Assembly (NCBI GenBank): GCA_977016875.1
Contig: CDRNST010000008.1
Location: 3,162,001-3,226,000 of the forward strand
Direction: 5' to 3'
DNA from: Pavona decussata
Lineage: Eukaryota
Length of the DNA stretch: 64,000 bases
Positions 53,553 to 57,800 of this stretch are shown here, one piece after another. A model generated the notes under the pieces. The model saw nothing but the letters and a program-made list of their open reading frames with translations, was not told the origin of the DNA and ran no database searches. Positions within the stretch are counted from its first letter, which is position 1. Every line of letters starts with the position of its first letter. Position numbers and translations under genes: made by a program.

Positions 53553-54340
53553 TTATACATGCTTTGGCTGGTGTGATCCTTTTCTGGCCCTTGTTATTTT
53601 AGCTCTATTATGGTTGTCTTTTTTTCTGGCTTTGCTCTTAAACTCTCTTCTAAATAAACCATTACCCATACCACCCATACTTGACATTCCCGGATCCTGC
53701 ATTTCTGGCATTCCCTCCATACCACCCATTCCATTCATTCCGTTACCTACACCACCGTCCACACCACCAATGCCATTCATATTTTGCATTCCGTCTACCC
53801 CTCCCATCATACCCAATCCGTCTGATCCTCCCGGCATATCATTCATTGGAGCGAATCCTCCTGGGCCCTCCGGCATATCCTGCATCGGCCCAAAACCTCC
53901 TGCTCCTCCAGGCATATCATTCATTGGAGTAGGACCACTGTCTGGTCCTCCTGGCATATCATTCATCCGTCCTAATCCTCCAAATCCAGCTGGCATATCA
54001 TTCATCGGACCCAACCCTCCCATACCTCCAGCTCTGCCTTGCATTCCCTGCATACGATTCATCCCTCCCATCCCTCCACCTTTTCCCATTGCACCCATTC
54101 CATTCATTCCAGCCATACCACCCATTCCATTCATCCCGGCCATACCACCCATTCCTACCATTCCACCACCTCCACCTCCTCCCATATTTGGCCTTCCACC
54201 CATCATTCCATTAGAATTTTTCCAAGCGCTGGCAAATTGGTTTTGCATCTGTTTTTCAATGGCCGACATCGCTTGCTGTTGCATTTGTTTCATCGCAGAA
54301 TTGTAAAACATCTCGGGTGTAGCTGCATCAGTACCTGCAC
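53553..54340 (-). CDS. Gene B, alternative (distal) last exon; isoform 2, about 538 aa
   Basis: Acceptor aatctcatag at 54342-41, phase 1. Reads GAGTDAATPEMFYNSAMKQMQQQAMSAIEKQMQNQFASA, then Gly-Met repeats, 5x (P/R)M(N/Q)DMPxG, RR and a Lys/Arg-rich tail; AATAAA near 53314-53309. Confidence 0.7.
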
Positions 54341-54879
54341 CTATGAGATTGTAATGACACCAAATTACTACTTAAAGAGGTTTTCATGCATATACTTTAA
54401 GCTCTTTGACGCATGCTGTTTCGTTGGAAATATCATTTTATAATTCCTAAACTTTGCGACCTATAATGCAAACATGTAAACACTGATTCTTTTTCATGCT
54501 ATGTCTATATGGAAAAGAATCAGAAATTCACTATTTTTAAGAACAAGCTTCAAGAGAGCGAAACTTCACTTTTTAAGGGTTTTTATTACAATTTGTAGTT
54601 CTCTTACAGAGACTTAGTCATGTCATATATTTTCAGTTGGGGATGAACTTGATTAACATGTCGGCAGAAGTTTATAGTCCAGGAATAAGAATTATCTCAA
54701 AAACACTTTAACGTAGGTGAAAGACAATGAATACTATAAAAAGAGGATCGGTCTGCCATTTCCTACTGTAGACAGTCGTCTGTGGTACCTTTATTATGAT
54801 TACGATGGGATACTCCAACGACATGTTTTCAGTCATCGTCTGAGAAAGAAAAGAGTTTCATGCAGGAAATGTGGGTCTC

Positions 54880-57800
54880 TCATTGCTTCCTTTTGTAGTG
54901 TTTACCTGTTGTCTTTCCTCTTTTCTCAGTCACATGTTTTTTTGATGCCACCGTAACTTTCTTTTTTCTTTCTTTGCTTGCATTTTGGTCGTTGTGCTTC
55001 ACCTTTTCTTTCTTTTTAGGCTTTTCAACTTTTGCTATTTTTGTTTTTCTATCATATGGTGCATCGTAGCCGTCATCCATTTCACTTTCAGGGCCTTCGT
55101 CGAACGGCCCCTCAAAGGCAGCACGGTCGCGAGCGGGAACAAAATACGGCTCATCATCATTATCGTCATCGTCATTATCATTATCCACCTCCATTTCGTC
55201 GTCTTTGAAGTCCTCTTCGTTGTTAATGTAGTGATGTCTGCGGAAAGGAACAATATAAGGCATTCGGTCCCGACGTTCGTATCCCAAAGGAACTTTATCT
55301 CGCCCAACCGCAGGTTCGTCAGCCATGGGATACATTGATCTCATCGGCATCCTAAAACCCTCTCCAAAGCCTCTGGAGTAGTAGGGATTACCTCCGAAGA
55401 ATTCAGCATTGTCTCTAAGTGAATCTCGTTGAATAGCATTGTCCGTCTCATCCATCTCTGGCATACGGTTACCATACATTCCTGCCATTGCCATGTCTCC
55501 CATTCCTTCAAATCCAGCCATTCCCCCCATTCCCCCCATACCTCCCATTCCTCCCATATCCATTCCCCCCATACCTCCCATACTACCCATGTTATCCATA
55601 CCTCCCATACTTTGCATGCCACCCATACCACCCATTCCTCCCATTCCTCCCATCCCTCCCATTCCTCCCATCCCCCCCATTCCTCCCATTCCTCCCATTC
55701 CACCCATTCCAGCAGCTTGCATAGCAGACTTGAACTGGTTCTGCATCTGTTCTTGTATCACGGCCATAGCTTGCTCTTGCATTTGCTTCACCATCGGGTT
55801 GTCAGGCGCTTCTGAATTGCCTTTGTCTATAATATAATGACACGGAAAGGAAAATTTAGCAATCTTCTTATCACCCTTCATCGTTTTATCACTTTAAATG
55901 AAAATAAATACAATGAAATCTGCAATTACACAGCGACAAACCGATGAGTGGTGCCGGATCACTTGTAGACCTGGATCAGCAAATTATTTCAAATACAAAA
56001 TACTGACGGCAAACTTATCCCAACGGCGGAGGTGACGAGATTGATAGAATAAACAACAAAGGCTAGAATAACTGAAATATATTTGTTTTTAAAAAAAATT
56101 TTGCCTGATATTTCGGTTTGCAATACAAACCTTACTTGGGGGCTGAACGATAAAGAAAGTGAGAAACAGAAAAGGATCATTACAAATGAAGATTTAAAAT
56201 ATAAAAAGCGTGACGATGATTGGTTGTTTAGTTACACGCCAATGACATGTCTCACACTTGTAACTTTGTCCTAAAGAACCAATCATTGTCACGCATTTTA
56301 GATTTTAAATCGTCATTTGCAACGATCCTTTTCTATTTCTCACTTTTCTTTTTCGATCAGCCCCCGAGGAAGGTTTGTATTGCAAACCGAAATAACGGGC
56401 AAAAATTTGTTTGTTTGTTTTTGTAACAAATATATTTCAGTTATTCTAGCCTTTTTTGTTTATTCAGTATCAAGTTCGTCACCTCCGCCGTTGGGATCAG
56501 TCTGCCTTCAATGTTTTGCAAATAAAAATACCTCATACCAATAGTAATGTATGAATCTCTACAAACAGAATATTAAAATGTCTCTGCCAGTACCTTGCTC
56601 CTGACTCGGAGCTTCATTGGGTTCTACAGAAAAAAAGGGAAAAAAACCAATCAATTGGTGAATGCAATAGAAAATTATGTTAAGCCATTAAAGTAACATA
56701 AAGTAACATAAACATAATTATATCATCATTAATTAGTATAATTACTCAGGTGATTATAGAGATTCTATTGATCTCATTGGTCGAGGACTGCGTCATATCT
56801 TGCTATAATCACCCCGCGCGAGGTGATAATGGCGGGAGCACTAATTTTCAAAATGGCCGCTTAGCGATTTGTTCGATTCATACGATGAAAGGAAATGCAG
56901 TTTCGAAAGGTGCTACAGATGCGACTTAGTCCGGGTTGACACTTTTTGAAAGCATGACATGAAGGTTTTGACATGCTGGAAATAAAGAAACTGGAATAAA
57001 GAAACTTTTTGCTCGAAAGTAATTTGTTGTAATTTACAAGTGTTTTTTTTTTCTTACAATTAGTAAGAAAAAAAAACACTTGTAAATTGCAGTGGAAATG
57101 TTGTCGGTGCTGATACCAATAAAAGCTTAAAATGAAAACAACAAATTACTTTCGAGCAAAAAGTTTCTTTATTTCCAGCATGGTTTCACCAACAAAACGA
57201 ATTTAAGACAGAATTTGAAAGCCTGGAAGTAAACGAGACGAGTAAATGTCTCTTTAAGTGTAAAGTTTTACTTAAAGTTTTCGTTTTAGTGAGGAGAAAA
57301 GACAGCAATTTTAAGAAAAATAGTTTTTCGTCGGCTCGAGCGGCCCTCGGCCACCATCCAAAGTCACCGCCTCACAACGAAAAATTTTCATTTAAGACAA
57401 GCTTGGACATGTTTATTGAAGCCAATAAAGGACTTAATTCCGAGGGCAATTTATAAAAGTCCGTTAACCGGAGAAGACATCAACAAGAAACAAGTGTGCG
57501 ACAAAGTGCTAACACGTGTCATCCTGAAGTTTTGCACCAACCAGCTTTATTCATCTCCATCTATTTTGGTAAACGGGTCTGAGAAAGCCAACATTCCTTC
57601 ACTGAAGAAATCAGTGCTTTGTCTTATTGAAACGACAGAGAAGTTTAGAATACTGACATTCAGTTTGAGGCATGAGCAGTTTATCGATTGATGATGTGAT
57701 TTCGATTGAGCTTGTGATCGGCAGACTGCGCGTCTCTATTCATTAACGCGTGATAATTTGAAATTTTTCGGACAGTTCTTGTTTTTCTGTTATAATCACC

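Follow-up and report, generated by a model that had tools for sequence, protein, structure and literature searches.

How does one gene end in two homologous repeat blocks, each of which carries its own stop codon? The question is raised by gene B, located on the minus strand of a 64,000-nucleotide stretch of Pavona decussata DNA (contig CDRNST010000008.1 of assembly GCA_977016875.1, positions 3,162,001 to 3,226,000), which is called the window here and to which all coordinates refer. A first-pass annotation of the window had proposed mutually exclusive last exons, each spliced to a shared donor at 56594, so that the repeat module would be swapped between two secreted variants, with putative differences in mineral or metal binding or in mechanics. 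A different arrangement was found. Both blocks lie in one mRNA via an internal donor at 54906, and gene B is, with a probability of roughly three in four, a composite-exon gene giving a short one-module and a long two-module secreted product. The long product loses neither the (GGM)n tract nor the acidic block, and it gains a second module; nothing is swapped.

Gene B was read as six exons, with phase 1 at every exon boundary. Its parts are given below; in nucleotide motifs, the bar marks the splice junction.

60936-60882, minus strand: coding part of exon 1, with the ATG at 60936-60934, the signal-peptide-like sequence MRNRPVVLSLLLAVGLLT and the donor CAG|GTAATA after 60882; predicted from the sequence.
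59653-59627, minus strand: exon 2, 27 nt, phase 1 to phase 1; predicted from splice consensus and frame.
59460-58744, minus strand: exon 3, 717 nt, Ser/Asp/Lys-rich with 2 Cys; 3' end set by an RNA joint, 5' end predicted from the sequence.
56623-56594, minus strand: exon 4, 30 nt, carrying the donor 56594; both ends set by RNA joints.
55826-54906, minus strand: exon 5 as far as it is shared by the short and the long product; RNA joints set its acceptor at 55826 and its donor at 54906. It contains, in order, the Gln/Met head, (GGM)n, a Tyr/Arg/Pro segment, an Asp-rich block and a Lys-rich stretch to ...EKRGKTT(G).
54908-54900, minus strand: internal 5' splice site CAG|GTAAAC; the final exon base is 54906 and the intron GT lies at 54905-54904.
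54905-54880, minus strand: read-through tail with which the short product ends, (G)KHYKRKQ, and TGA at 54882-54880; intronic in the long product.
54905-54341, minus strand: intron 5, 565 nt, at the same time the 3' untranslated region (UTR) of the short form.
54340-53553, minus strand: exon 6, the second module, with the head AMKQMQQQAMSAIEKQMQNQFASA, Gly/Met and PMNDMPGG repeats, LFRRE, a basic tail and TAA at 53555-53553; acceptor set by an RNA joint.
53552-53001, minus strand: distal 3' UTR, with about 190 nt more beyond 53001 in record 1 of the X1 contigs; contigs are unbroken over 53001-54338 in run X1 and comparable in X2, X6 and X8.

The sequence and its translations agree with the basic description in the first-pass annotation, namely two minus-strand blocks, each with a phase-1 acceptor, its own stop and a downstream AATAAA. 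The proximal block begins at the acceptor tattatag|AC at 55826 and its frame is open until TGA 54882-54880. The distal block begins at ctcatag|GT at 54340 and is open until TAA 53555-53553. Past the proximal stop, minus-strand AATAAA motifs occur at 54795-54790, which is 85 nt after the stop, and at 54587-54582, with an AATATA in intron 5 at 54631-54626. Past the distal stop, AATAAA occurs at 53314-53309 and 52935-52930.

The order of splicing was determined from RNA contigs. Fourteen runs of the same organism contain just 22-39% of the sampled words of 53001-59000. This share is about the exonic share, and the runs were therefore flagged as probable RNA. Contigs of four of them (X1, X2, X6 and X8) were mapped to the locus; these runs represent four studies and no more than three samples, X1 and X2 sharing one. 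The joint from 58744 to 56623 was found in all four runs and the joint from 56594 to 55826 in three of the four, both with GT..AG on the minus strand. The summed length of exons 1, 2 and 3 matches record 4 of the X1 contigs, which reaches 560 nt upstream of 59000.

The decisive joint connects 54906 with 54340. It was found in X1, X2 and X8 (contig depths 70, 3 and 25), is canonical GT-AG and keeps the frame; it was printed as 54338->54904, "cut +2", with CT..AC on the plus strand, which equals GT..AG on the minus strand. Both sites are in phase 1, and the joined frame ...ACA ACA G|GT GCA... reads ...T T G A G T D A A T P E M F Y N S... The distal block is thus attached to the proximal block and not to the shared donor assigned to it in the first-pass annotation, which had itself named the presence of both blocks in one mRNA through an internal donor as the outcome that would overturn its model. 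Mutual exclusion, with each block spliced to 56594, is now very improbable. A join of 56594 to 54340 would be in frame, both sites being phase 1, and a minor form of this kind is possible as contigs drop rare variants; however, no such joint was found in any of the four runs, where the joints 54906 to 54340 and 56594 to 55826 were each found in three, and the internal donor, which that model does not need, is conserved in seven lineages.

Another conceivable origin of the distal block is a tandem paralogue, separate from gene B, that has a promoter and a first exon of its own. The blocks are homologous, and the gap between them, though short, is not zero. Against this, neither a signal-peptide exon nor a signal-peptide-like open reading frame (ORF) was found in the 565 nt between the blocks, as the first-pass annotation had also noted; exon 6 is spliced to exon 5 in RNA; and the arrangement and its splice sites recur in other species. 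We consider this origin hardly credible.

The same donor is also crossed by unspliced RNA. Contigs running through it were found in all four runs: 54618-54933 in X1, 54313-54933 in X2, 54730-54969 in X6 and 54469-54933 in X8. X6 has further contigs in intron 5, at 54624-54759 and 54086-54653. The spliced and the unspliced branch part exactly at the donor, and 54904-54933 is common to both. This is the pattern that a graph assembler yields when spliced and unspliced molecules coexist. Intron 5 stands apart from the other introns of gene B. The unique parts of introns 3 and 4 had no contig coverage, and the unique stretches of intron 3 at 57001-57200 and 57601-58000 were at depth 0 or <1 in all four runs. 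Together with the canonical joints, these empty stretches argue that the runs are RNA and that genomic DNA is an unlikely source of the read-through.

Several points weigh against the composite-exon reading. That the runs are RNA is a guess, and their data are contigs, in which 3' ends, strand and abundance are not visible. The shorter side of the joint between 54906 and 54340 is 26-30 nt, just below the 31-nt bridging rule; an overlap of this length is what a 31-mer de Bruijn graph gives where it branches. The joint represents two independent samples, X1 and X2 being one, and X6 did not assemble it. No one contig connects exons 1-4 with exon 6; this is attributed to the GGM repeat, which breaks assemblies between exon 4 and exon 6. 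The positions of AATAAA differ between species. Finally, low-depth contigs of X2 and X6 span the entire intron 5, unspliced acceptor included, and the read-through RNA could, in part or in whole, be unspliced precursor and not a polyadenylated short mRNA.

The last points lead to the reading in which only the long two-module mRNA is real and the read-through is unspliced precursor or a retained intron, with no regulated short isoform. The X2 and X6 contigs over intron 5, the invisibility of poly(A) ends and the variable AATAAA positions all fit it. It is nevertheless unlikely in our judgment. The other introns of gene B have no such coverage, and the X1 read-through contig ends at 54618 with no contig at 54401-54600, which indicates that the read-through in X1 does not span the whole intron. 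In addition, the 8-codon tail stays basic in all lineages, its stop position is kept in five, and an AATAAA lies 85 nt past the stop. The short mRNA is therefore likely a real product. Of the earlier proposal of two secreted variants by alternative 3' processing, two C-terminal variants probably remain; their modules are serial and not swapped.

In the composite-exon arrangement, exon 5 would serve as a composite terminal exon of the intronic polyadenylation type. When the donor at 54906 is used, exon 5 would be joined in frame to exon 6 at 54340, both modules would stand in series in a protein of about 845 codons, and the transcript would end with the distal 3' UTR. When the donor is ignored, translation would continue 24 nt further to TGA 54882-54880, adding the 8 codons GKHYKRKQ to a one-module protein of about 591 codons. 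The short transcript would end inside intron 5 by cleavage and polyadenylation there. The lengths of 591 and 845 codons are summed exon lengths, and the exons were searched separately. The choice at the donor may be regulated, perhaps via an invariant TGCATGA located 42 nt into the intron.

The protein family is very small and, as read here, coral-restricted: 8 true matches were found by word search, and 8 by profile search among 1.84 billion representatives. All of these matches are ORF-level fragments, unnamed and without Pfam domains, and the profile search gave no full-length annotated protein. A word search with exon 6 gave one match, and low-complexity candidates swamped that search. The relatives are sequences of Tara Pacific and other coral-type metagenomes, taken from ENA assemblies, of which several are Tara samples, and from Logan contigs, and no named homologue was found in the word or profile searches.

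The donor core AG|GTAAA is present in seven lineages, namely the window, L003 (with the near-identical L004, L008 and L009), L012, L005, L010, L011 and L014. Five of the seven have CAG|GTAAAC in full; L012 has AAG (A at -3) and L014 has GTAAAA (A at +6). GTAAAC was considered as a deliberately weak donor; since the constitutive exon 3 donor also reads AAG|GTAAAC, this idea was given up. The acceptor TAATCTC(A/G)TAG|GTG is kept wherever it was checked (L003, L005 and L008/L009), 565-880 nt downstream of the donor. The distal ORF is intact, with 253 amino acids read in L003 and L005 and called ORFs of 265-268 amino acids in L008/L009 and L012/L013; the called 265-amino-acid ORF of L012/L013 stands at the position corresponding to exon 6. 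All seven lineages with the donor have a basic read-through tail, and in five of them its stop falls at the same codon. In two distant relatives, P0008 (L006) and P0036 (L007), the ...EMDDGYDAPYDRKTKIAKVE... core is kept and the donor is absent.

The ratio of nonsynonymous to synonymous substitution rates (dN/dS, Nei-Gojobori) lay at 0.12-0.15 in exon 5 and at 0.16-0.29 in exon 6, values read with dS saturated at about 1-1.8 and with repeat parts that align poorly. A run of N, an assembly gap within the GGM repeat of the orthologous exon 5 at about 5900-6000 of L005, was excluded from this calculation. L014, a public metagenome contig, is essentially one untrimmed read, with adapter-like ends at 1-30 and 485-561 (CTGTCTCTTATACACATCT...) and a poly(A) run, and it was used for the donor region only.

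The element in the intron is as follows.

54864-54858, minus strand: TGCATGA, beginning 42 nt into intron 5; an invariant block in the alignment.

When the first 100 nt of the intron were aligned, TGCATGA was invariant in six sequences with diverged flanks, and it is also present in L014. It lies 42-50 nt into the intron across the seven lineages (window, L003, L012, L005, L010, L011 and L014). In L014, the TGA of TGCATGA now serves as the read-through stop codon. The sequence (U)GCAUG is the motif of the Rbfox splicing factors, and in other animals a copy that closely follows a 5' splice site usually promotes the use of that site. At Rbfox-regulated alternative 5' splice sites, a conserved (U)GCAUG lies no more than about 50 nt past the donor, a layout also found here, and TGCATGA possibly regulates the choice between splicing and read-through in an Rbfox-type manner. 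A search of the coral's own genome for PF12414 (Fox-1_C) was blank, as were all of its controls, and is uninformative. A second TGCATG at 54390-54385, near the acceptor, was dropped as a candidate; it is not conserved in L003 or L005.

Two known systems help to place the locus. To our knowledge, composite-exon switches have been little described in corals. The mechanism as such is well known from other animals. The composite terminal exon, its intronic polyadenylation and the immunoglobulin M (IgM) example are described in PMC5928244. In the IgM switch between secreted and membrane forms, a 5' splice site in the last coding block is either used, leading to distal exons and their poly(A) site, or ignored, in which case the message ends after a few more codons and a stop, at a poly(A) site in the intron. 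Gene B is similar in that its donor lies 24 nt before the stop and that spliced and read-through RNA were both seen. It differs from IgM in that both products would be secreted, the extra part is a second repeat module and not a membrane anchor, and the use of an intronic poly(A) site is putative. Skipped terminal exons of the calcitonin/CGRP type likewise offer a choice between two 3' ends, and a separate stop and poly(A) signal belong to each. In that type, one upstream donor is joined to either terminal exon, whereas in gene B the distal exon hangs on the proximal exon.

The two blocks are related to each other, as the first-pass annotation had described from their heads, Gly-Met tracts, RR sites and basic or Lys-rich tails; translations, the genome search and the head alignment all agree with this. 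When the distal exon was compared in six frames with the whole 602-Mb genome, the matches were itself and the proximal exon only (E 6.4e-9, 63% identity, residues 9-94). A composition-corrected BLASTP of the proximal against the distal block gave nothing significant and missed the homology. The block heads quoted in the earlier annotation are identical at 16 of 24 residues, and the head alignment has 16 invariant columns over three species and both modules. The heads cluster by module rather than by species, which indicates that the module duplication predates the split of these species. On this sequence evidence, an old intragenic duplication gave two homologous modules, in which a Gln/Met helix and a Gly-Met tract are combined with an RR site and a basic tail.

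The modules differ in composition. Exon 5 contains 17% Gly and 13% Met; in exon 6, which has PMNDMPGG-type repeats and a basic tail, the shares are 28% Gly and 17% Met. The RR site reads FRRHH in one block and LFRRE in the other, and both blocks have basic tails. The acidic stretch is present in the proximal block only, as proposed earlier, with a net charge of -20 over residues 201-250 and a Lys-rich stretch after it. Exons 5 and 6 contain no Cys.

The structure of exon 5 was predicted with AlphaFold2 using a small alignment, and one element was obtained.

55797-55714, minus strand: predicted alpha-helix of module 1, exon 5 residues 10-37, MVKQMQEQAMAVIQEQMQNQFKSAMQAA; AlphaFold2.

The pLDDT of this helix is about 74-87, and no other structure was predicted. 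The mean pLDDT of exon 5 is 48, with 217 of 306 residues below 50 and 10-residue block means of at most 53 from residue 41 on. The gene B protein thus looks almost wholly disordered in the model apart from the 28-residue Gln/Met helix. The helix segment is conserved in both modules and three species in the head alignment, and the amphipathic Gln/Met helix is, as modelled, likely a self-association element. Each module runs from the Gln/Met helix through a flexible Gly-Met tract and a conserved F-R-R site to a basic tail, to which module 1 adds the Tyr/Arg/Pro segment and the Asp-rich block.

Dibasic sites are conserved at fixed places in this layout. EKR|G is conserved at the module boundary (window 54907-54925, EKRGKT; pattern T-x-K/R-R-x-K across species), and a further dibasic site is conserved after each Gly-Met tract, as P-F-R-R-H in module 1 and L-F-R/K-R in module 2. 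They are possible convertase cleavage sites, and the long form could be a precursor cut in two at EKR|G. In the proposed mechanism, one or two helix-plus-tail "sticker" modules would alter assembly or cross-linking in the extracellular matrix. Our best guess is that the protein is a component of an extracellular matrix or gel, with the module number setting its cross-linking ability.

The protein family is new and unnamed. Pfam gave no family for exons 3, 5 and 6, and an ESM Atlas look-alike search with exon 5 gave no usable match. A literature search on Met-rich secreted proteins of corals and cnidarians found no description of the gene B family, and the Porites australiensis genome paper makes no mention of Gly- or Met-rich skeletal proteins. 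A literature search on the string MGGMGGMGG returned mainly GroEL/Hsp60 papers.

Three known proteins resemble the gene B protein in part. Cnidoin is a Gly/Gln/Met-rich elastomer of Hydra nematocysts with 17% Met (PMC4321713). Like the gene B protein, it is cnidarian, secreted and disordered, high in Met (17% vs 13-17%) and Gly, and carries dibasic processing-type sites. Unlike cnidoin, the gene B protein lacks the minicollagen Cys-rich domains and has no Cys in exons 5-6; no sequence similarity between the two was found in the searches, and the repeat unit is GGM or PMNDMPGG against QMQGCGQQxP. Cnidoin is a possible functional analogue, by which the gene B protein would be an elastic or self-associating matrix component. 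The (GGM)n C-terminal tails of GroEL are reported to be flexible with a polyproline-II tendency (PMC12571646), and as pure Gly-Met repeats, the GroEL/Hsp60 tails offer a physical model for the (GGM)n of gene B. These tails are about 13 residues long and belong to a cytosolic chaperonin, whereas the gene B tracts have about 70-200 residues and would be secreted; the likeness is one of composition and not homology. The coral skeletal proteins of the SAARP/CARP type (PMC3748352, PMC8691061) are likewise secreted and lineage-restricted, with an Asp-rich block, which in gene B (DNDNDDDDNDDE) could bind calcium. They differ from the gene B protein in that no sequence match to them was found in the Pfam, word or profile searches, and the acidic block makes up little of the gene B protein.

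These results correct the gene model. Prokaryote-style ORF calls in public collections all end at the read-through stop, and an annotation that ends at the first stop, or that splits the locus, loses the 845-codon two-module product. The locus offers a clean, conserved composite terminal exon in a coral with defined elements: the donor 54906, TGCATGA at 54864-54858 and the intronic AATAAA. Its product is an uncharacterised, apparently well-expressed, lineage-restricted and Met-rich secreted protein, and is a candidate for matrix or biomineral functions. A wider and rather unlikely extension is that gene B belongs to a coral-restricted family of Gly/Met-rich secreted polymers whose valency, one or two helix-plus-basic-tail modules, is set by conserved (U)GCAUG-guided splicing against intronic polyadenylation. 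If true, regulated composite-exon switching would tune the assembly or mechanics of the extracellular (skeletal, mucus or cnidocyst) matrix in cnidarians, and a new class of methionine-rich structural protein would stand beside cnidoin.

Other features were observed at the locus. In L003/L004, only 278 nt separate the exon 3 ORF from the exon 5 ORF; in the window, this interval holds two introns and exon 4 over about 2.9 kb, which are mostly repeat insertions. Intron 4 contains a nested palindrome of about 540 bp at 55987-56527, MITE- or foldback-like, with arms that are 82-90% complementary (55987-56046/56468-56527, 56047-56098/56414-56465, 56091-56158/56345-56412 and 56156-56231/56271-56346). 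High-depth RNA contigs hit parts of this palindrome and continue into unrelated sequence, which indicates that copies elsewhere are probably transcribed.

Intron 3 contains a perfect 36-nt inverted repeat at 56995-57030/57138-57173, with 107 nt between the arms, which is probably a small foldback element. In the same intron, 58151-58238 is replaced by 22 other letters in contigs of X1 and X2 (depth 189 and 52). At 58400-58620, several high-depth contigs touch the window and then continue into unrelated sequence. This suggests that the contigs at these two places are repeat copies expressed elsewhere and not gene B. At 53557, three of the four runs have T and not A on the plus strand, by which the last codon of exon 6 changes from GTA (Val) to GAA (Glu); here the individual that was assembled and the colonies that were sequenced probably differ by a polymorphism.

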